From Pelomyxa schiedti (Eukaryota; Protista; Evosea), in the NCBI GenBank assembly GCA_020536535.1, contig JAHLWZ010000020.1, positions 1-37,287 of the forward strand: DNA of 37,287 bases, in the 5' to 3' direction. Below the pieces are notes generated by a model that searched no databases, had not been told where the DNA came from, and was given only the letters and a program-made list of their open reading frames with translations. Shown one piece after another: positions 3,287 to 16,800 of the stretch (its first letter is position 1; each line of letters starts with the position of its first letter). A program made the translations under genes and the position numbers.

Positions 3287-4525
3287 TTACTTTGTTTGTT
3301 TGTTTGGGAAGAGATGTGAGAGTGACGTAATGACTTGGCTGCACACAGAGCCAATAGGCTGGCTAGCATCTACGTTGATGGGTGTGTTGTTCTCACCAAC
3401 CAGAGCAGATAGAATGGGTGATAGAGAGGACCGGTAGAGTGCAAGGCGGGAGCGCACAACCGGCTCAGTGTCATCAGGCCGCTGGATCACTCGGCTCATG
3501 ACTTCTGGTGGAGGAGGATTGTAAATGAGGTGGTATATCTGTCGATGATATACGTAAGTGTACATATGTGTAGAAACGCAAAAAGAAAGAGATACCTGGT
3601 TTGTGACGGGATCAATTCTTCTTTGAGATATTCGCTCTACAACGGCGTCATCAGTTATATCGAGAATAACTATTGCATCTGGTTGTCGGCCAATTTGTTG
3701 CACAAGTGATGTGGCTTGCCCTGGATTCCGTGGAAATCCATCTAGTAGCCATCCCTACAAAAAGACATTGCATTAGTAGTAGTAGTAGTATATCCAATTT
3801 TCTGCACACCCACATTTTCGACAGTGCGTAACCGCTCTGTTACTACTTGTGTAACTATACTATCAGGAACCAGTAATCCAGCAGCCAAATACTCCTGAAC
3901 CTGAATTCCAATCGACGAGTTGTTCCATATCTATCATGCCAAATCAGTTCCCAACCGCTCCCCCAATACCACGCACAAATATATTATTAGTCCAGCACTA
4001 CATTACCGCTGCACATTATATCCATTACGCGTTATGTTTATACTTTAACAATAAATTTAGATATGTTTTAGGCCCAACGCAATGTATTTCCAGGATAGCG
4101 CACACGGGCACGGGCACACGCACACACACACACGGGCACACACGCACATGCTCCCTGAGTAGGTCGCCGCTGGACACGTGGGTCATCGCGTACCTCTCCC
4201 CCACGCTCCCACACACCGTCCCCTTGCCCGCCCCCGGCGGCCCAAGCATCACAACAACAACCCCTTGTCCTTCCCCTTGCCCTTGTTGTTCGTGCTGCAC
4301 TTCTTGCACGTGTACAGCCAGTTGTTGTTTCTGTTCTTGTGTCGTTGTTGGTGGTTGCTGCTGTTGTTGTTGCTCTTCTGTCCCCTCCCACTCGCAGGTG
4401 CCTGCCGTACCTGAAGCGAATGTGCCGCCGGTGAGAGTGGTGTCGGTGGGGGACGCTACTTGCACAAGCACCACAGCAGAGGCCATCATCGAGAGGCACA
4501 CCAACAACGCACAAGGTCGCTTCAT
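3287..4525 (-). CDS. adk: Adenylate kinase, multi-exon, with N-terminal hydrophobic leader and Gln-rich linker
   Basis: P-loop GPPGAGKGT, HVSSGDLLRE, GLLVPD, GWLLDGFPR, LID region RRIDP...IYH and QRPDDTE, spread across GT-AG-separated exons. Start ATG at 4525 is inferred. Confidence 0.92.
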
Positions 4526-4689
4526 GAACGATGAGAACTCTTGAATAAAATAATCAACCCGAAGAAGGTCGGAAAAAGACTTCTTCTGCGATGAAGAAGA
4601 AGTTGAATCAAAATCAAAGAGACGAGATCCCTGAGTTCCACCCATCACCTCATGACACCTGCAAACACGAAACAGCAGACTCCCAGCGG

Positions 4690-5001
4690 ATGTTGGTGCT
4701 GCACAGCATGTGCCACTGCGGCTCGCGGCACTGCCTCTCCATCGAGGCGGCGGCCGGGGCGCGAGCCCGAGGCGTCGCGTGGCTCATCAGAAACAAGTCG
4801 AGGGGGATGGGGTGGCTCCGAGGAGGAGGCTGCTGCTGGTGGGAGGCTGAGGTGGGCGCGGCCGCAACGGGTGATGAGACAGACACGGAGACGGAGAGGT
4901 ACCTTCAGCAGAGGAGGAGGAAGGCCAAGGAGCAGGTGGCGGTGCTGAGGGGGCTGTGCGTGGGTGGACACTTGGAGATGGCTCAGAGGTTCGTGGGCTA
5001 A
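4690..5001 (+). pseudogene. Internal fragment of a family A (ankyrin-like) gene
   Basis: VLHSMCHCGSRHCLSIEAAAGA...WLIRNKS...RRRKAKEQVAVLRGLCVGGHLEMAQRFV closely matches 32348..34564. It lacks the family N-terminus and stops at TAA TAA. Confidence 0.8.
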
Positions 5002-5350
5002 TAACAGTCGCTTATTCAGTGGACCCACAGCACAGCATCACGTGTCATTGAATTCCCAGAAGTTGTCAGACTTCTGTGGGTAGCCTCCGGGGCCGACACC
5101 GTGATTCCCTTTTTCGGGAAGCCATCACTTTCACACCTTCATCACTAAAATTATTTGTTTGAAACAGTGGCCGCCGATAATTGGCACCGAAAATTCGATT
5201 TGGTGCGCATTTCCCGGTGGGTAACTTTTCTAAAATGAAACAAAGAGGCTGTTTTGTTTGCCGGTTGAACCATAGCATCCTCACTCTCGGCATCACATCA
5301 CATGAATGGGGGCCGTCATTTTTACTGGCACGAAGAATGATGGGGAGAGA

Positions 5351-7879
5351 TCAGAGTTTGTTTGTGGAGGGAGATTGATGAGTGAGTGCTGAGATGGCAT
5401 CTGCAGCTGAGAGCCTGGCAGCCTTGTCGGGGTTCATCATCCTAATCATCACGGACTCCACCAACGGAACAACTGTGTTGTCCACACCACCGTTGTAGTT
5501 CTGATTGACCTCCTCTCCTGATGCCACAGTTGTTGTTTGGGTTGGCAGTGGTTGTGGCGGTGTGGTTGATGCTGCTGATGAAAACAGCACTTGTGGTTGC
5601 GAGGGTTTCACAGATGAGAACGAATGAAGAGGGAACTGGCTGAGGAGTTTCTGGGTGTTGAACGTGCTCATGTCACCATTCATTGTGCTCCCAATGAACC
5701 TGTTGGATTGTGGCAGGAGAGCATCCCAGAAAGTGAGGGCGAGTGCAAAGGAGTCACACTTTGAGTACGAGAACACACCACTGGTTCCCCTCGTGATCCT
5801 CTTGAGGAACATGCTCAGCTCTGGCGGCATCGTGCCTGTGTTGCCCCATGGTTGTGATGTGGCTGACACCATCATGTCCATGTTTGGGCAGTGCTGTGCC
5901 TCGCCAAAGTCGATCAGTGTCAGTTTTCCAGTCTCTGGATCAACGAGAATGTTGTCTCCCTTGATGTCCCTGTGTTGGTATTACAACAAAATCAAAAGAA
6001 GAAGGATGGGTGTTGCGTGGGGACAAACCTGTGAACAACAAAATGTGATTCAATGTGGGAGATTGCCTTGAGTCCCTGAACAAACAAATTCTTAACTTCG
6101 ATGGTGCTGGAGGTGGAAGAGAGGAGGAATGATGACAGTGTGATCCCACAGTGGGGCATGAGAATGGCCAACGATTTGTTGTTGCAGAGTTCCTCCCTGA
6201 AATACTTTTTGTCACTTGGTATTTTTTCCACAAACTCGGCTGGCAGGCTGTGGGTGGTTCATCATTGCAATTGAAACCAAAAAAAAAAAAGAAATACCAA
6301 GGGATGACCAAAGCACCAAGAGGGTGGATCACGTTTGGGTGATTTGGAACCAGTGAGAGGACAACACACTCAGCCATGTATTTCCTCCGCAACAGTGTCT
6401 GTTGTGGGGTGTTCTCCCAGTTGAAAATGATCTTCATAACCATGCCTGTTGTTGGAGACACTGAACCAGAAGCCCCTGAAGTCGATGTTGGTGTGGTTGT
6501 GGAAATGCTTAGGCTGCTGGGGTTGTTGGATGTCGTGGTTTGGAATTGCACTTTGAACACAGCAGCATTTGACCCTGTGCCAAGCAGTTTCTCCACCACA
6601 AAATCACCAACAGTTGCTGAAATCAGTGATGTCATTGTGTTCAAAATGGTCTGAATATGGAGTGAGTGTGAAAAGCAAGTGAGAGAGAAACTATGTATCT
6701 CGTGGACTTCACAACTTCTTCCTGGAGCTCTTTCCTCAGATGTTCATTCTCTTTTTCCAGCTTAGCCACTTCTTTCTTGAGAGAGTCAAATTTCTGTGTG
6801 TTAACTTGTGAGCCTAATCGAATGCACTCACTCACCTCTGCAGAATGTGCCATTTCTTGAAGTAGGAGTTCTTCTAAGGCTTCAACTCGTTTTTTCAACG
6901 TTTCAACAGTGTTATCTTCTTGTTGTGGCACTACAGAATTGTTCCACCCATTACTAAGTGCAGAGCTCTCAGACAGGAGCTTTGCTGCGCCCCTGTGGCC
7001 AAGCTTGGCAGCCATTACCAGCCAGTGTTGTGACTGCTCCACGTTGCAATCAATGCCGTCACCATCCCTGAGACACACACCAAGGTGAAACATTGAAACA
7101 GGATCACCACCCTCAGCACCCATCTGGAAATATCCAACAGCAGCTCTCTTGTCTGTTGGTGCTCCACAGTCTCCCCTTTGACAATACTCTCCAAGTTCCC
7201 CAAGTGCCTCTGCACCCCATGGTGCATTGCTCTTTGCGTTGTTGAACAACTCACGAGCCTTTTCGGTGTCCAGGACAACACCAACGCCCCTTTCATGGCA
7301 ATACCCAAGGAACACCGTCGCATTGGAACCACGAAAAGAACGGAGTAGTCTCACAGCCATTGCTGCGTCTCGTGTCACACCACACCCCCACAAGTAACAC
7401 CACCCAACGAATGCCTGTGCATGCTCGACTGTAGGCTCTGTGAGGAGCCTCACAGCCGTGGCCCAGTTCCTCGGCACACCCTCGCCACGCAAATAACACA
7501 CACCAAGCCGCCATGAGTGCCGGGGAGATTTGGCGATTGCGGCGCTGTAGAGCGATACGGCCCTCTGTTGGTCACACTCCACACCCACGCCGCGCTGGTA
7601 GCACCGCCCAAGCATACACATTGCCGGCGTATGGCCCAAGTCAGCAGCCACGGCCCACGCCGGCACCGCCTTGTCCACGTCACCACCAATGTGGTAGTCA
7701 CTCCCAACCGACGACACGCCTACACCATCGCGTGCGGCGCGGTACCAGTGCAGAGCCTCGGCCAAGTTCTTGGTCACTCCTTCACCACGGCGGTAGCACT
7801 GCGCCAGTCCACGCATCGCTTCGGTGTTGCCTGTGTTGGCCTGTTCAAAGAGGGAACCGATGCCCGTCGCCATCGCCAT
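5351..7879 (-). CDS. SEL1-repeat + coiled-coil + Ser/Thr kinase (PINK1-like catalytic domain), copy 1, apparently intact
   Basis: About six SEL1 repeats (e.g. AMCMLGRCYQRGVGVECDQQRAVSLY). Kinase motifs LGTGSNAAV, MVMK, HPNV, HRDIKGDNIL, DFG, MPPE and YSKCD are joined by short introns (~6645-6685, ~6248-6297 and one within 5972-6028). Confidence 0.88.
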
Positions 7880-7930
7880 CGAATTCGATTGAAGACTATT
7901 ATAGGGGATGTTCTCCCAGCACAACAGTGT

Positions 7931-9346
7931 GCATATCTGGGTCAAAGGGCGGCTGTTTTTTTCCCTATCACTTTCCTGTAAAAACAGCCGCCCAGCCGCC
8001 CCCTCAAAACAGCCGCCAGGCGGCTGTTTTAATAAGGAAAAAAAAATAAAACAGCCGCCCGGGCGGCTGTTTTACCAAAGGGAAAAAGCCATTGTTTTTT
8101 TCACTGTTTTTAACAGGTTTGAGTCTGCAACATGTAGACAAGGTGGGCAGTTGGTATTTCCAATTTTTTTTGTGAAGAACATATGTGGACCCTTGTGGAT
8201 TATTGTGAACAAACAGCTGCCACCTCACACCAAACAAGTGCAAGGTAAATTTTTGTATTGTTACAGTGCATTATCCTTGTGCAACCTTCCCTTTCTCTTT
8301 GGTTACTTATCTCCAATTAGTTGTTTGTGTTTTTGGGTTGTTGGTGCCAAGCAGGAAAGGGGGGTGAGTGAGGAGAAGAAAGGTTGGGGTACTTCCTGCT
8401 CAACCCTACTGTTGGGAGGAGTGGGAGGGGGGTGTGGACTTGGGTTTTGTTGGTTTGTTGCTGGTGTTGGTCTGAGCATCTTGTGGATGGAGTTTGCATG
8501 CTGGTTAAGTGTGAGTTCTGTTGTTGTGTGTTGTGTGTGTTGTGTGTGTTGTGTGTGTTGTGTGTGTTGTGTGTGTTGTGTGTGTTGTGTCAGTGTTGTG
8601 TCAGTGTTGTGTCAGTGTTGTGTCAGTGTTGTGTCAGTGTTGTGTCAGTGTTGTGTCAGTGTTGGCAAGTTATTCTGAGGGTGTTGATGTGGGTTTGTGT
8701 TGGCCTCAGTGCAGGCAAGGCGTTGGTGGTGTCGGTGGCGTATGTGTAGGCGTCGTCGGCGTCGGTGTCAGCGTCGTAGGCGCAGGTGTATTACACGGAG
8801 TACAGTCAGCCCTGGTGGCGAGGGGCCGACGTAGTCGTAGGCCTCAGCTGATGGCGTGGGCGCCGGCACTGTTGGGTAAACCTTCACCCCCTTCACTCGG
8901 TCCGTTGCTGCTGTTGTTCCCAACACCGCCGCTCGACGCCTACACATACGCGGGCGCCGACACCAACAGCCCTTTTCTGATCGTTTCTAGAAACACGGAG
9001 ACTGGACAAATCTGTTGCTGTAGACTGAGGCAGAGTACTGTTGTTGTTGCTGCCCCTTTTTACTTCCCCCTATTGTTGTACTACACTGTTGTTTGTAACC
9101 GTGACTTTCCAGCCAGAACAAACACCCTTCGATTAATCACGCTCCTGTGCTGTTTTGACAGTCTAGCCCACAAGGGGACACATTTTCCTGTCGTGCCCAC
9201 CCCTTCCTGAAGTACTTCAGACAGCCGCCCCGAGGGGCGGCTGTTTTGCACATGGTTTTGATAGGACAGCCGCCCAAAAAAAAGGGCGGCTGTTTTTACA
9301 GGAATTTGACAGGCCAAAAAACAGCCGCCCTTTGATCCAGATATGC
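7931..9346. mobile_element. Non-autonomous TIR DNA transposon-like element (1416 bp)
   Basis: 63-bp terminal inverted repeats (7931-7993 and 9284-9346, 57/63 identical). Multiple subterminal AAAACAGCCGCC/GGCGGCTGTTTT motifs at both ends. No transposase ORF and no clear target-site duplication. Confidence 0.8.
8531..8661. repeat. Compound minisatellite (TTGTGTGTG)x6 followed by (TTGTGTCAGTG)x7
   Basis: Read directly: 9-mer at 8531-8584, 11-mer at 8585-8661. Confidence 0.95.
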
Positions 9347-9847
9347 CGTGGCCACACAGTGGCTCAGGAGGAAAGCATTGTATCCATGACTCCTGGATGG
9401 GCTCTGTGCATGTGGCAAAACGCGTAGGAATTTGATAAACTTAGGGGATAGAATGGACAATCGAGGAGAAACGACGAAAAATGGTCTAAACCTCGTTTTA
9501 TCCATCCCACTCTAACGGTTAGAAACAAGCAAGATGAATAATGTTTTTCTACTCGACTTTGGCCACAATTAAACAATTTTGGTTCGGCTTAAGAGCACGC
9601 GACTTTTCTCGTGCGGCCAAGTTGTGGATTCCATTCCCGCGCATTAGCTTCGCGGCCATCATGTTGATCATCTAAAGTTCTATTTCTATCCATACCGCTA
9701 ACACTCGGTCTAAGCTAAAAATCGAGGCAGTGTGGGTGTGACACCTCCACAAGGAAGTGCGGCAGGAGGGTTTGGAAAGATGACTTGTGTTTACAACAAC
9801 GAGGTGGTTGGCGTGGTTGCCAGGTTGTTGGCGTGGCATGTGATTTT

Positions 9848-9988
9848 TTTTGTGGTACATGCCACTCGGAGTACTTCTGGCAATGGGAACTAAAGTCCAG
9901 TAACTATTTTATTTGTCAAGTGGAGCAAATAGTTACTAGACTTCGTCGGGGAACTCCAACTTGTTGTGGAGTGGCATGTACCGCAAAA
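9848..9988. repeat. Nested inverted repeat / long imperfect hairpin (MITE-like or structured RNA)
   Basis: Outer arms 9848-9867 and 9969-9988 (19/20). Inner arms 9893-9909 and 9927-9943 (16/17). A GGAGT/ACTCC pair lies between them. Confidence 0.75.
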
Positions 9989-10222
9989 CGAGCCCCCCAA
10001 ACCATCATTCCTTCTCTGAAGCGAAGTGGTTGTCAGGCTGTTCACTCCCTGTCACTTGAACACGTGGGAACGGAAAGAACATAACGCCACTGTTATGGAG
10101 TTAGAAGAATAACACGTTATGGACAATTCAATTTCAAGGAAGCACCATGTGTACTTCCACAAAGTACACGAACTCGGCCTTGCCCGCAAGGCTCTGAAGT
10201 CTGGCGCACTTTAGCGGGATGA

Positions 10223-10660
10223 TTGGAGAGACTGAGGACTGAGCCGAATCTGGACTATTACCAGAATGAGACAGCGAAGGTAATGATCAGCGCACAGCAT
10301 CTGATGGCAGGGGAGGGCCCATACCACGCACAAAATAGAATTTTTGGTGTGTCCACCACCTTTTTTGTCACGCACCGATTTTTTTACAAGATGCCGAAAA
10401 CCACAGTGGTGTCAACAGCCTTGTTTGGGTGCCAGGACAAGTCCACCACTGTTCTGGAGTGTGACGTGACGTCTTCTAAAATCACTGAACACAATTTGGG
10501 CAACAGTGTTAACATGGTGTTCTTGAGTGAAACTGGAAACTGGTGTTTTTTGTATTGTGCCCCAAGTCCTGATTTGGTGTGTCATTGGTCAGCACACATG
10601 GGTCCATCATTACCACCATCTAATCTCTCTAGAGTTTTTCAGCAAGGTGCCCAAGAATGA
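10223..10660 (+). pseudogene. Possible degraded family B fragment
   Basis: IFGVSTTFFV weakly resembles the family GVSPTLGV motif. The downstream sequence is beta-rich. No intact start, and it abuts the 3' end of kinase copy 2. Confidence 0.25.
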
Positions 10661-10673
10661 GGCTCTGGAGAGA

Positions 10674-13530
10674 TCAGAGTTTGTTTGTGGAGGGAGATTG
10701 TTGCGTGAGTGCTGAGATGGCATCTGCAGCTGAGAGCCTGGCAGCCTTGTCAGGGTTCATCATCCTAATCATCACGGACTCCACCAACAGAGCAACAGTG
10801 GGGTCCACACCACCATTGTGGTTCTGATCAACCTCCTCTCCTAATGTCACAGTTGTCGTTTGGGTTGGCAGTGGTTGTGGTGGTGTGGGTGATGCTGCTG
10901 ATGAAAACAGTGAGAAAGGGAAGGCACGTGAAAGGCGTGACTTAGGCACAGCTTTTGCTGGTTGCACTTGGGGCTGTGAGGGTTTCACAGATGAAACTGA
11001 ATGAAGAGGGAACTGGCTGAGGAGTTTCTGGGTGTTGAACGTGCTCATGTCACCATTCATTGTGCTCCCAATGAACCTGTTGGATTGTGGCAGGAGAGCA
11101 TCCCAGAAAGTGAGGGCAAGTGCAAAGGAGTCACACTTTGAGTATGAGAACACACTACTTGTGCCCCTTGTGATCCTCTTGAGGAACATGCTCAGCTCTG
11201 GTGGCATCATGCCTGTATTGCCCCATGGTTGCGACGTGGCTGACACCATCATTTCCATGCTTGGGCAGTGCTGTGCCTCGCCAAAGTCGATCAGTGTCAG
11301 TTTTCCAGTCTCTGGATCAACGAGAATGTTGTCTCCCTTGATGTCCCTGTGTTTGTGTTACAACAGAACATCAAAAGAAGAAGGGTGGTGTTACCTGTGA
11401 ACAACAAAATGTGATTCAATGTGGGAGATTGCCTTGAGTCCCTGAACAAACAAATTCTTAACTTTGACAGTGCTGGAGGTGGAAGAGAGGAGGAATGATG
11501 ACAGTGTGATCCCACAGTGGGGCATGAGGATGGCCAATGATTTGTTGTTGCAGAGTTCCCTTTCTATAAAAGAAATACCAAGGGATGACCAAAGCACCAA
11601 GAGGGTGGATCACATTTGGGTGATTTGGAACCAGTGAGAGGACAACACACTCAGCCATGTATTTCCTCCGCAGCAGTGTCTGTTGTGGGGTGTTCTCCCA
11701 GTTGAAAATGATCTTCATCACCATGTCTGTGGTTGTTGAATCTGATGCTGAAGCAGAACAACTTGCAGTTGATGATGATGAGAAAATGGGAGTGGTTGTG
11801 GAACTGGTTCTGCTCCTGTTGGCTGCTGCATTTGTGAATTGCACTTTGAACACAGCAGCATTTGATCCTGTACCAAGCAGTTTCTCCACATCAAAATCAC
11901 CAACATTGGCAGAAATCAGTGATGTCATTGTGTTCAAAATGGTCTGCATAAACATGGATGAAGTGTGAAAAGAGGAGGGAGACAGGAACCATGTATCTTG
12001 TGGACTTCACAACTTCTTCTTGGAGCTCTTTCCTCAAATTTGCCACTGAAGTTTGTTCCTGAAAGAGTGCTGCCTCTGTGGTCTTTGCACAACTCTCAAG
12101 ATGTTCATTTTCTTTCTGCAGCTGTGGAAATAAAAAATCTTATCATAATTGACTCACATGCCTCATCAATCTTCTTTGTCAAGTCCTCCCAGAATTCCTT
12201 GTTTCATTTAATTGTTAATCTGGGTTCTGGGGAAAAAGTACTGCACCTCCAAATTGATAACTGCTTGATGTTCCTGTGGTGTGGCAGAAGAGTTGAAGTT
12301 AATGAATTTTAAGAAGCTTGAGAATTGTGGAACCTCTGCTTTCTCTCTTTCCAACTGTGCCACTTGTTTCTTGAGAGACTCAAATTGCTGTGTGATCTAA
12401 GAAGTGAACGAGGCAATAACACAACACACCTCTTCATAATGTGCCCTTTCTTCAAGGAGCTGTTCTTTCAGGGATTCAACTTGATTTTTCAATGTTTCAG
12501 GAGTGATTTCTTCTTGTTGCACTGCAACGTTGTTCCTCCCATTGTTGCTCACTGAAGATGAGGAAGAGATCTCAGAGAGGATATTTGATGCACCCCTGTG
12601 ACCAAGCTTGGCAGCCATCACCAACCAGTGATGTGACTGGTCCACGTCACAATCAACACCAACACCATCCCTGAGACACACACCAAGGTGAAACATTGAA
12701 ACAGGATCACCACCCTCAGCACCCATCTGGAAATATCCAACAGCAGCTCTCTTGTCTGTTGGTGCTCCACAGTCTCCCCTTTCACAATACTCTCCAATTT
12801 CCCCAAGTGCCCCTGCGTCCAATGGTGTACTCTTTGCCTTGTTGTACAACTCCTGAGCCTTGTTGGTGTCCTGGACAACACCAACACCCCTTTCATGACA
12901 ATACCCAAGGAACACATCAGCCCTGTAACGACTTCTAATCCCTAGAGCACAGTTGAGTAGTTCCACACCCTTTGCCACATCCTTTGCCACGCCACACCCC
13001 CACAAGTAACACCACCCAAGGTACGCCTGTGCATCTTTGTTGTCACCAGACTGGTGGATGAGCTGCACGGTCATGGCCCAGTCCCTCTGCACACTCTCAC
13101 CACGCAAATAACACACACCGAGCCGCCAGGAGTGGCCTGGCCACACGCTAATTGCAGAAGTGTAGAATGACACAGCCATCTGTTGGTCGCGCTCCACACC
13201 CACGCCATGCTGATAGCACCACCCAAGCCGCGCCATTGCCCAGTTGTACCGCAGGTGAGCAGCCATTGTCCACGCCGACACCGCCTTGTCCGTGTTACGG
13301 TTGTATCCATCATCACCACTTCCATTGTAGTAGTCACACCCAACATCAAACAGCCCACGCCCATCGCATGCAGTGTTGTAGCGGCGCAGTGCCTCGTCGA
13401 GGTTCTTAGCTACTCCTTGATCACCTGTGCGGTAACACCGTGCCAGTTCACTCATTGCGTCTGCCTTCTCGACGAAGGAACCAATGCAATTGTGGGTGCT
13501 CTCGAAGTGGGTTGCGGTCACTGCAGCCAT
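10674..13530 (-). pseudogene. SEL1-repeat + coiled-coil + PINK1-like kinase, copy 2, disrupted by a net 85-nt deletion at ~11560-11571
   Basis: Highly similar to 5351..7879 and has extra coiled-coil exons (~12040-12310). The intron and exon segment LPAEFVEKIPSDKK of copy 1 are missing. Read-through is out of frame, and splicing the residual 15 nt creates TGA. Confidence 0.7.
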
Positions 13531-13810
13531 AGGAATTAGTGGAATTGATCTGAGGTTTAGGATTTGCCAAAGAGGAAAACGAAAGCTAAGGCAGAGGAGG
13601 CTCTCAGGAAAGTCCTTGGTTGTCCTCAAGGCTGCAACATTGGTGAAGTCAACCAAAATGACTGCGATTACGACTCCAATTGAGGGACACCATCATCAGC
13701 AGAAATACTTCCCATTGCCTGCAGAGAGTGGAGTTGGTGGTGGTGTGCCTCCTCTTCAGGTATCGCAAATCCGGATTCCCGCTTTGGGATTTCCCAGAAA
13801 CCTATCACAG

Positions 13811-16800
13811 ATGCAGCCGCGACCAATGGCGCAAGCGTGCGGCGGGGGAGTGCTGGACTACGTGATAGGTGGTGGTGGTGGTGGCGCAGCAGCGGCGAGG
13901 ACATCCACAGGGACAGGTGGCGGCCCCCAGCAGCGCGACGGAACCACCACAACCAGCAGCAGGATGGTGAGCCACCAACCAACCAGGGAGAGGGTCGGGA
14001 CACGGGAACAAACCACAAACCCTCGACCAAACCAATCAACTAATAGCAGGGAGACGAGAGCATAATGATGATGGCTGCTGCCGCCAGCACCACTGCGTCG
14101 GCGGTCGTGGGGCTTGGGGATGGTGGGCTGGGTGTGGGTGTGGGTGGGGGTGGGGGTGTGGGTGTGGGCGTGGGCGTGGGCGTGGGTGGCGGGGGGATGG
14201 GAGTGGGGGTGGTGGACCAGGTGGGGGCGGCTAGGGGGCAGATGAGGGGGCTGCTGGACCAGTTCAAGTCCTGGGCCGCACCCACGCCCCAGTCCCAGTC
14301 TCAGCCGCAGGCGCAGGCGCAGATGGCGGGTCTGGTCACTCCCTTCACCAACTCCAACCAGTCGTCTCCTCTCGTTGCCTCTGAGTGTGGAAGATTGGCT
14401 GTCCTCACAAAGGTTTTTTTTGTGTTTGTTTCTGTTTTAGTTCCCTTTTTTTTTTTTTTTTTTTGGTTCAGCTAAATAAATCAATTAATTGTCCAGGCTT
14501 TTGATCTCTTGCTGAACTCTCCGAGTGAACCCTCATCATTCCTCAACAATTTCAGCACCATGGCGGTTCTGGTCAATGACACGTTCAATGAAATTCTACA
14601 GTTTACCTCGGATCCAGCTCCGGCTGTTCGTGCTGCAGTCATAGGTTTTTTGGATACAATTTGCCGGAAATTTCCTGAAAGTATTTTGCCTTCCCCCGTT
14701 TAAAAAGGAAGCTTATTTCATTCCAAGGAATCGAACCCTGCACAGTTATGTTTCTACATATTGTTGATGACAATCCTACGGTGGTTGTCAGCAGGATCTT
14801 CTTAGCTGTGGCGAACTTGTGGCCGAAATCCTTGGAAATCTTGTATAAACAATCAACGAAAACACAGAGTAACTTATTTTGATTAGACTCAAGCCTCCCA
14901 GTGAAGGGCCTGCAGATCCACATGCCCTCTGGAATAACATCAACACACTCAAGACTCTATGCATAACACGATCACTTTTTTTACCAGAGTGTGCCAGAGT
15001 GAATTCCATAAGACTGATGGAATCTGTGATCCTCTGTGGAACCAACAGTGAAAATGTAAACGATGGCACATTTTCTCTTGAAAAAATCCCTGCCACCCAT
15101 CATGTGTTGTCTGCCGCATCAGTCAACAAGGATGCCATGGAGGTCTTTGATTTGTTGATTCAAATGGCTAACAAAATACAGTAATCATACCCTTTCCGTG
15201 GGGTTTCCTTTTACTCACCAACCCTTCAGAACAAGCACACATGCTATTGTTATTGGCCGGATACTTCTTGACCTTGGCAAACAGCGGCAATCACTTCTTT
15301 CTCAGGTCTTGCAAGCAGTGAAGTCCATAATTTCTCTCAGCAACAGCTTCACCGCTCAGTTGCATTCTATACATTACACATTAAAACTTTGTTTGCTGTC
15401 TGCACTAAGGTTTTCTTCAGCTCCCTTGAGTAATGTACTTATCTGTTTATTTTTTTTCAGAACAAATACACAAACCGTTACAGTGAATATGCCGCTATTC
15501 ACAGAGCTACTCACTGAACTGGGGGCAAAAGACCTGCTCAATGAACACCTGGAGAATGTATTTCCACCAACTGTTCAGATGATGGTCTAACAATACTGAA
15601 ACCTTCAGGTGAATGAACTTGCTATGAAAGCCGACAGTCCTCCTCTTACTCCTCCTCCTTCACAGCAAATAAGTGGTCCCAATACACCCCCGACTCAACC
15701 ATTGCAATCCAGTGCTGCTCCCGTGGCCTTGTCACAGTCTCCACCTCCTCAGCTGCTTCCACAACCTCCACTTCAACCCCCTATGGCTCCAACACAGTAT
15801 CCTCCGCACCCCTATGCCTTGATTCTTGAACAGCGGCTTCCTGGGTGAAGCAAAGAGGGTTGTATTTCTTTTCCTTCTAATTTATTTCTAGAATTTCGCA
15901 ACTATCAGCCTCATCCGTTGTTGACATTGCCCTTGAAAATATGTGGAGAATAGAGGCCGCTTCTACACCTCCTCCCTTTTACGGCTCTCTCCCAGAATCT
16001 TTGGACCAAGTATGCCCCATTGCACCCTATGACAATTCAGAAAACTGCCATAAAAAAAGATGCTTTTGCACATTTCTCAAGTTGCAAGCTCAAATCCTCC
16101 TCCAGAAGTTACTTCTAGAAAAAGGAGGGATCCAAGACTTGCCCGCCTTGAACAAACAGAGTAAAGTAAAACTCAAATTCAATAAAAGTAAACGCTTCTT
16201 AGATTGCCCCCACTGTCAATGCAAATTCCACTTCCGTTATCAGCCATGCAAACACCACAAATGCAAATGCCACCCCTGCAAATACAAGGCCAAATCCCAC
16301 TGCCAATGCAACCTCCACTCAACCAACCAGACTACAGTATGACACCATCTGCGCAGCCACAACAGTACCCATCATATACACAACAAGTTCAGTTGGTGCA
16401 AACAGCACCAGAACCTCAGCAGGCTGTTCCAGCACAGGTGAAATTACCCTCAATCAACACACGGCTAACTACTTCAGGGTTCCCTATCTTCAAACGACAT
16501 GGTTGAAATGAGTAACAGTGCAATTCAGCGAATTCTGATGGCAGAAGAAAACGTACCTTTTATCCTGCCCACTTTTTTCTCACGGCATTCAGGCTGCAAT
16601 TGCAGGAGCACTGGATTTACGATCCAGTCTCATCGCCAAGCTTGTTTCGTTCCAATATCAAAACAGTGATAACATTCCTCAAATCATATCCTTTATTCTA
16701 CAGGATCTGACTGCAAGGTTTCTTTCTGAACGTCTGCTCGTACGAAGAATAATTTTTTTTAGGAGACCTCTTGCACTCAAGTTGATGTATGCAATTGCTG

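Follow-up and report, generated by a model that had tools for sequence, protein, structure and literature searches.

Gene structure and domain layout

The stretch of DNA analyzed here (the window) comprises 37,287 nucleotides (nt) of Pelomyxa schiedti (contig JAHLWZ010000020.1 of assembly GCA_020536535.1) and carries, on its minus strand from 7879 to 5351, the five-exon coding sequence of the NCBI protein P0068 (778 amino acids). An initial annotation, made from the letters alone, had described Sel1 repeats, a coiled coil and a PINK1-like kinase in one spliced open reading frame (ORF) at 5351-7879; these limits are the exact stop and start of the minus-strand gene, and P0068 holds all three parts (Pfam; AlphaFold model). 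The gene is thus confirmed as real and as joining a Sel1-repeat module, a long helix and a kinase. By tblastn, P0068 could be placed on the window at 7879..5354 in five exons with 96-100 % identity, and the frame runs from an ATG at 7879 to a TGA at 5353-5351, broken by short GT..AG introns. The published P. schiedti gene models were made with Augustus and refined by PASA and EVM with single-cell transcriptomes; the name attached to P0068 in NCBI, "calmodulin-dependent protein kinase", is misleading. The parts of the gene are as follows, with model confidence expressed as predicted local distance difference test (pLDDT):

6836-7879, minus strand: exon 1, codons 1-348, with the ATG, the Sel1 array and the first part of the long helix (tblastn of P0068; Pfam Sel1, 2.7e-42)
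6794-6835, minus strand: intron 1, 42 nt, GTGAGT..CAG, in frame, inside the coiled-coil region, spliced out in the NCBI model
6692-6793, minus strand: exon 2, codons 349-382, remainder of the coiled-coil helix
6651-6691, minus strand: intron 2, 41 nt, GTTTCT..CAG, with another in-frame donor at 6712
6298-6650, minus strand: exon 3, codons 383-499 plus 2 nt, with the N-terminal helix, glycine loop, S/T-rich beta2-beta3 loop, Lys455, Glu476 and HPNVIH
6248-6297, minus strand: intron 3, 50 nt, GT..AG, interrupting codon 500 (Cys)
6029-6247, minus strand: exon 4, codons 501-572 plus split codons, coding for the Insert-3-like segment and beta5, followed by the D and E helices as far as His572
5970-6028, minus strand: intron 4, 59 nt, GT..AG, interrupting the Arg573 codon of the HRD motif
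5351-5969, minus strand: exon 5, codons 574-778 plus TGA, with DIKGDN, DFG (593-595), GNTGTMPPE, YSKCDSF, a disordered S/T/P/Q-rich loop, Arg758 and the stop
6953-7876, minus strand: Sel1-like repeat solenoid, residues 2-309, 18 paired helices, pLDDT above 90 (Pfam; AlphaFold model; PDB matches)
6624-6916, minus strand: single 70-residue helix, residues 322-391, span containing two introns; a presumed coiled coil that continues straight into the kinase N-lobe
5381-6602, minus strand: PINK1-like protein kinase domain, residues 399-769, span containing two introns

The intron count had initially been put at three and has to be corrected to four, the 42-nt intron inside the coiled-coil region having been missed. 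Reading through this intron was rejected: it would add 14 residues relative to P0068, a stretch also absent from the paralogue P0001. For intron 2, a 62-nt form with the donor at 6712 (21 nt upstream) is likewise disfavored and the 41-nt version favored, because the paralogue P0016 keeps the matching TRY(K/I)TI stretch.

Exon 1 alone matches Pfam Sel1 (PF08238) at 2.7e-42 in 7 stretches, and the whole protein gives Sel1 at 9.7e-40 and Pkinase at 1.4e-17. Searched singly, the last exon matches Pkinase at 2.7e-06 and has Tribolium PINK1 as top PDB match (E 0.017 over 93 residues); exons 3 and 4 gave no Pfam match and weak PDB matches, the top kinase matches of exon 4 likewise being PINK1. Against the PDB, the Sel1 part finds bacterial Sel1 proteins and SEL1L at 3e-30 to 1e-13. 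A full-length AlphaFold model, computed with 24 family members as input (mean pLDDT 81.5), orders the protein as a Sel1 solenoid (2-309), a short disordered linker, one unbroken helix (322-391) and the kinase from residue 399, with an end about 10 residues past the last kinase helix. Two Ser/Thr/Pro-rich loops of the kinase (beta2-beta3 and C-lobe) are disordered. Heptad occupancy of the long helix is 0.69, and its leucine-zipper Pfam matches are weak.

The initial annotation had also held that Sel1 repeats stand in place of the mitochondrial presequence and transmembrane helix of PINK1, and this is borne out: no membrane helix is predicted anywhere in P0068, whose peak 19-residue hydropathy of 1.47 falls within the kinase core, and no mitochondrial presequence is recognizable at its start, MAMATGIGSLFEQ not being basic. 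The protein is predicted to be soluble and cytosolic. In an alignment of kinase domains from 43 family members, Lys455, Glu476, His-Arg-Asp 572-574, Asp-Phe-Gly 593-595, Pro-Pro-Glu, Asp645 and Arg758 occupy invariant or nearly invariant columns, and for this reason the enzyme is predicted to be active.

A second gene of the same build lies in tandem with it in the window:

10674-13530, minus strand: tandem paralogue with the same Sel1, coiled-coil and kinase layout (ORFs; tblastn)

Comparison of this paralogue with the P0068 gene gave ratios of nonsynonymous to synonymous substitution rates (dN/dS) of 0.47 for the Sel1 part, 0.35 for the N-lobe exon and 0.20 for the C-lobe exon; the P0068 gene is under purifying selection. 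Judged by the nonsynonymous rate alone (dN), the Sel1 array exceeds the C-lobe sixfold, from which it appears that the binding module evolves faster than the enzyme. Along the pair, the C-lobe is 93 % identical and the Sel1 array only 66 %, with unequal synonymous rates (dS of 0.16 versus 0.47), and this unevenness suggests gene conversion or a mosaic origin.

Kinase family and relation to PINK1

The gene had been described initially as duplicated in its lineage, and the duplication turns out to be extensive. In the genome searched for exon matches and paralogue counts (52,367,397 bases in 5337 contigs), the last exon has 157 matches, about 107 of which start at the catalytic-loop end of the exon and thereby point to roughly 100 loci; these counts are lower bounds. 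Among 1.84 billion representative proteins, phmmer returned 37 at E <= 1e-30. The top 53 matches of a word-index search were all from P. schiedti, as were 9 of the 10 intermediate phmmer matches looked up, and word-index protein searches with the kinase found no match outside this species. More distant matches come from Mastigamoeba (two SH3 domains, or ARM repeats, plus kinase), Trimastix (ARM plus kinase) and metagenomes (one with leucine-rich repeats, LRRs), and animal PINK1s follow at about 60 bits in phmmer. As far as these searches reach, the family appears almost confined to P. schiedti, with distant relatives in Mastigamoeba and Trimastix. The N-terminal modules of the 53 annotated relatives are diverse: Sel1 was found in 17, ankyrin in 11, a Ras/Roc GTPase in 2, and MORN and SH3 plus CS in 1 each. 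The ankyrin form P0072, with a kinase 69 % identical to that of P0068, nests in a tight subclade with P0068, P0070 and P0076, and its position among the closest Sel1 forms suggests that N-terminal modules were swapped recently.

Several lines of comparison lead to PINK1 as the nearest characterized kinase. When residues 383-778 of P0068 were searched against the PDB, the first twelve distinct sequences were all PINK1 (1.5e-12 to 1.8e-8), and the next family was Pim-1 with 33 bits over 46 residues. A profile of 43 family domains, built with no PINK1 included, found Pediculus PINK1 at 114.8 bits (3.4e-32), Tribolium at 95 and human at 93, these matches covering nearly the full domain, and next TTK at 74 bits. 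The motif pairs with human PINK1 that the initial annotation had listed were reproduced by HMMER (HPN, the pre-beta5 segment, HRDxKxDNILV, GN..PE and YSK.D). A kinase-domain model for which neither templates nor PINK1 sequences were used (pLDDT 84.7) retrieved about 20 PINK1 chains first in Foldseek (4.7e-15), followed by CK2 and cyclin-dependent kinases (CDKs; 1e-12). In the ESM Atlas, the top shape match was a 612-amino-acid rotifer kinase cluster; rotifer proteins of this length cluster with P0177, a protein whose score on a PINK1 profile is 411 bits. Sequence, family profile and predicted structure together support PINK1 as the nearest characterized kinase family.

The likeness, however, does not extend over the whole of PINK1 (NKF2; human, Tribolium and Pediculus; 6EQI, 7MP8, 9EIH), which is the top match in sequence, profile and fold. 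Common to PINK1 and P0068 are a G-x-G-x-x-A-A-V glycine loop, K-x-x-F-N after the catalytic lysine, HPN, HRD-x-K-x-DNILV, DFG, GN..PE, YSK-x-D and a segment of about 25 residues at the position of Insert 3 (beta4-beta5), which can be aligned to Insert 3 of the human and Pediculus proteins with gaps of only 1-2 residues. Both also have a variable loop at the position of Insert 1 (beta2-beta3), in P0068 a disordered S/T-rich loop of 30 residues that varies within the family and is without sequence likeness to PINK1; Tribolium PINK1 lacks Insert 1 as well. Opposite Insert 2 of PINK1 (helix C to beta4), the family shows a gap of about 20 columns, and the C-terminal extension is absent, the PINK1 profile aligning P0068 only to position 429 of 574. 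Unlike PINK1, P0068 thus has neither presequence nor membrane helix, Insert 2 or C-terminal extension, and carries a Sel1 array and coiled coil instead; its family forms a separate clade of about 100 copies, whereas PINK1 is present as one.

A tree with PINK1 and outgroups had been proposed initially as a check on membership of the PINK1/NKF2 clade. This assignment is upheld only in part: by sequence, profile and predicted structure PINK1 is the nearest known family, but in the trees the P0068 family stands outside the PINK1 clade in a clade of its own. A careful maximum-likelihood tree gave good support to the core Pelomyxa clade (99/99), to the family joined with its Mastigamoeba and Trimastix relatives (98/92) and to the PINK1 clade (99/94), but only weak support to the link between the family and the PINK1 clade (67/57). 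In one quick tree, the family grouped weakly with PINK1 (support 87); in a second quick tree and in the careful tree, it grouped with the A5 group (94 in the quick, 89/60 in the careful tree). An approximately unbiased (AU) test did not reject a joint clade of family and PINK1 (p 0.105), and the deep branching order varies between the trees.

A supposed "ATG1-like" outgroup (the N-terminal domain of P0136, P0202, P0208, P0176 and P0185) was discarded, being invalid in this function because its own consensus is PINK1-like in its motifs. Its members (P0202, P0176, P0185, P0136:1-305 and P0208) form a further PINK1-like kinase group in which HLD replaces HRD. The P. schiedti member is the N-terminal kinase of P0136, listed as "ATG1t" in NCBI, and the metagenomic P0208 (836 amino acids) has a ubiquitin-like (Ubl) domain and a SPRY domain after its kinase. 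Another kinase of the genome, at C113:68435-69337, lies in a 723-amino-acid open frame (L037) with a P-loop GTPase-like N-terminus. This kinase has HGD and ALKMMYNY, its beta5 is preceded by a long insert, and its position in the trees is unstable.

The suggestion that the gene is a redeployed PINK1 is not supported by the reciprocal test, in which a profile of 14 animal PINK1s was run on the P. schiedti genome. The best match was contig C676:52425-53213 with 134 bits, reaching to position ~532 of 574 and hence into the C-terminal extension; P0068 as a whole scores 90 bits and ends at 429, without Insert 2 and the extension, and Sel1-family copies stay under 50 bits per exon. The C676 ORF (L049:1417-2568, minus strand) encodes 384 amino acids with HQD replacing HRD and no Sel1 repeats, and its PDB matches with E <= 1e-8 are all PINK1 (5e-24 for the human protein). 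It comes from the same organism as P0068 and falls in the same broad PINK1-like group but is, by these scores, the better candidate for a PINK1 orthologue than the Sel1 family. A further candidate on this contig, L031 (C676:53507-55444), was rejected, with JNK/MAPK as best PDB matches (57 bits versus 47 for PINK1). The C676 ORF starts 11 nt past the stop of another kinase ORF (L049:2580-3728), and the short distance suggests that both may be one tandem-kinase gene. Since a much better PINK1 candidate exists in the genome, the P0068 family is, on the evidence of these profiles and trees, to be regarded as a separate PINK1-like family and not as orthologous to PINK1.

Proposed mechanism and competing explanations

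In our view, the locus is probably a functional gene of five exons whose product, a soluble and modular Ser/Thr kinase of the PINK1-like family, belongs to a separate clade and is no orthologue of PINK1. How such an enzyme might work can be inferred from its architecture, from the known PINK1 dimers and from Sel1 adaptors. The Sel1-like solenoid is likely the part that binds a partner or ligand, and the 70-residue helix would probably pair two molecules as a coiled coil. The Sel1 module may thereby bring the kinase to its target or partner, the helix-mediated dimer would permit trans-autophosphorylation as in PINK1 dimers, and the activated kinase could then phosphorylate a substrate.

Several observations weigh against this interpretation. 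The trees contain only two clear outgroup sequences, both TKL, and are therefore a weak test. The structural margin of PINK1 over other kinases is, as judged from the model, small: VIA-align gave Z scores of 24.7-25.6 over 277-300 residues for PINK1 and 24.2 over ~260 for CDK2. In a language-model feature search, clusters of SBK1 and PDIK1L were among the nearest, at 0.98. Finally, contigs from four sequencing runs (one sample) covering 4900-8400 hold all introns unspliced and are thus DNA; the joints in these contigs fall off the predicted splice sites and resemble paralogue variants.

Part of this evidence can be turned into a different account, namely that the likeness to PINK1 is shallow and the true kin are SBK1 (NKF1) or PDIK1L/STK35 (NKF4), families that lack solved structures and of which neither SBK1 nor PDIK1L appeared among the PDB matches. 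The feature search, with no PINK1-named cluster among those listed, would fit this idea, as would the weak deep nodes of the tree and the small differences between kinases in structural scores. However, 20 long-stretch phmmer matches were looked up, and among those from outside Archamoebae and Trimastix the kinase family identified by name was PINK1 (from Hydractinia). In addition, the rotifer matches reach their high score on the PINK1 profile, and three unnamed matches sit inside the PINK1 clade. The traits shared with PINK1 also go beyond general kinase motifs (K-hydrophobic-hydrophobic-F-N-aromatic, HPN, the Insert-3 segment, GN..PE and YSK.D), and we regard kinship with SBK1 or PDIK1L/STK35 as unlikely. 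Somewhat more doubtful still is the opposite extreme of a genuine PINK1-clade enzyme that phosphorylates Ser65 of ubiquitin or a Ubl domain, its Sel1 repeats replacing the mitochondrial anchor. It would draw on PINK1 as the nearest family with a segment of similar length at the Insert 3 position, on the Ser65 retained in P. schiedti ubiquitin, on more than 100 ubiquitin-domain matches in the genome (many of them polyubiquitin arrays), on the Ubl domain of the PINK1-like metagenomic relative P0208 and on the joint clade that survives the AU test. Yet the family lies outside the PINK1 clade, Insert 2 and the C-terminal extension are missing, the top PINK1-profile match in the genome is the C676 ORF, and about 100 copies with varied targeting modules fit varied substrates better than a single one.

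A broader version of this idea, in which the roughly 100 kinases retain the chemistry of PINK1 and phosphorylate ubiquitin or Ubl domains while Sel1, ankyrin, ARM, LRR, SH3 and GTPase modules aim the mark, would amount to a phospho-ubiquitin surveillance of organelles or endosymbionts, for which we see little probability at present. As to ubiquitin itself, a threshold of E <= 1e-15 yields 103 matches to its domain in the genome. Most of them belong to polyubiquitin arrays of head-to-tail units, which occur at more than 15 loci (among them C711:61483-63291, C202, C106, C830 and C166). In the P. schiedti ubiquitin unit, Ser65 is retained and position 57 is occupied by Ala. That the gene is an artefact or a decaying copy, be it a pseudogene or a Sel1 gene and a kinase gene wrongly joined, appears very improbable. 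Such a reading might appeal to the unspliced run contigs, to several NCBI family members that are Sel1-only or kinase-only fragments and to stop codons in some genome copies. The frame, however, is open across all five exons, the gap between helix and kinase is one 41-nt GT..AG intron, and the helix runs unbroken over this junction in the AlphaFold model. Moreover, Sel1 and kinase domains occur together in 17 of the 53 family matches, the tandem copy has the same layout, and dN/dS is below 0.5 in every part. A separate PINK1-like family of soluble modular kinases thus remains the explanation that we prefer.

Surroundings of the gene and comparison with known systems

Upstream of the start codon lies a further feature that may not belong to the gene:

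7947-8074, no strand assigned: palindromic AAAACAGCCGCC motifs in a cluster that lies 70-190 nt before the ATG

The motif AAAACAGCCGCC has 9 copies in the window versus 0.01 expected; they lie at 7947-8074 and 9236-9329, mostly as perfect palindromic pairs. At these sites, as at 5017-5133, the DNA contigs are 10-20 times as deep as over the gene body, and these are thus multi-copy elements. Just downstream of the gene (4025-4648, minus strand) is an ORF with an adenylate-kinase-type P-loop (GPPGAGKGT) and a poly-Gln/Glu stretch, and the spacer between the two kinase genes contains a GT-rich microsatellite (8520-8750) that translates into CCV/VSV repeats. A search of Rfam over 4000-14500 gave no match.

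To our knowledge, phosphorylation of ubiquitin is known for no kinase other than PINK1, and the relatives of PINK1 outside animals are hardly charted. We found no paper describing the P0068 family. The P. schiedti genome paper (PMC8887013) and the Mastigamoeba genome paper mention neither PINK1 nor Sel1, and according to a review on Entamoeba, PINK1 and Parkin are absent from this genus. The initial annotation had considered a PINK1-like kinase notable if its host had reduced mitochondria, and P. schiedti is such a host (PMC8887013). This amoeba is anaerobic, harbors many prokaryotic endosymbionts and has about 100 PINK1-like kinase genes with swappable modules together with a separate, better PINK1 candidate. 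If the enzymes are active, they would constitute a large uncharacterized signaling or surveillance system, and the natural variation of the PINK1 fold among them, including the Insert-3 region, offers a way to ask what makes a ubiquitin kinase. If their substrates are ordinary, the family would represent a lineage-specific kinase expansion like those of Rhizophagus or Giardia.

In the fungus Rhizophagus irregularis, lineage-specific, high-copy signaling genes likewise combine a kinase with Sel1-like repeats and have been proposed to serve environment perception. Its kinases, however, are annotated as S/T/Y or calmodulin-dependent with no PINK1-like one reported. The Sel1 solenoids of SEL1L/Hrd3, E. 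coli EsiB and the Helicobacter Hcp proteins are like the N-terminal 309 residues of P0068, but these are secreted, periplasmic or endoplasmic reticulum-luminal adaptors without a kinase, whereas P0068, for which a cytosolic location is predicted, joins its repeats to an enzyme. The relatives in the same kinase clade (98/92), namely Mastigamoeba P0157 (two SH3 domains) and P0175 (ARM), Trimastix P0151 (ARM) and the metagenomic P0154 (LRR), differ in their modules, are only 26-33 % identical and were recovered in small numbers per organism, as opposed to the expansion in Pelomyxa. In all of them, a protein-binding module is placed ahead of the kinase, following the same logic as in P0068.

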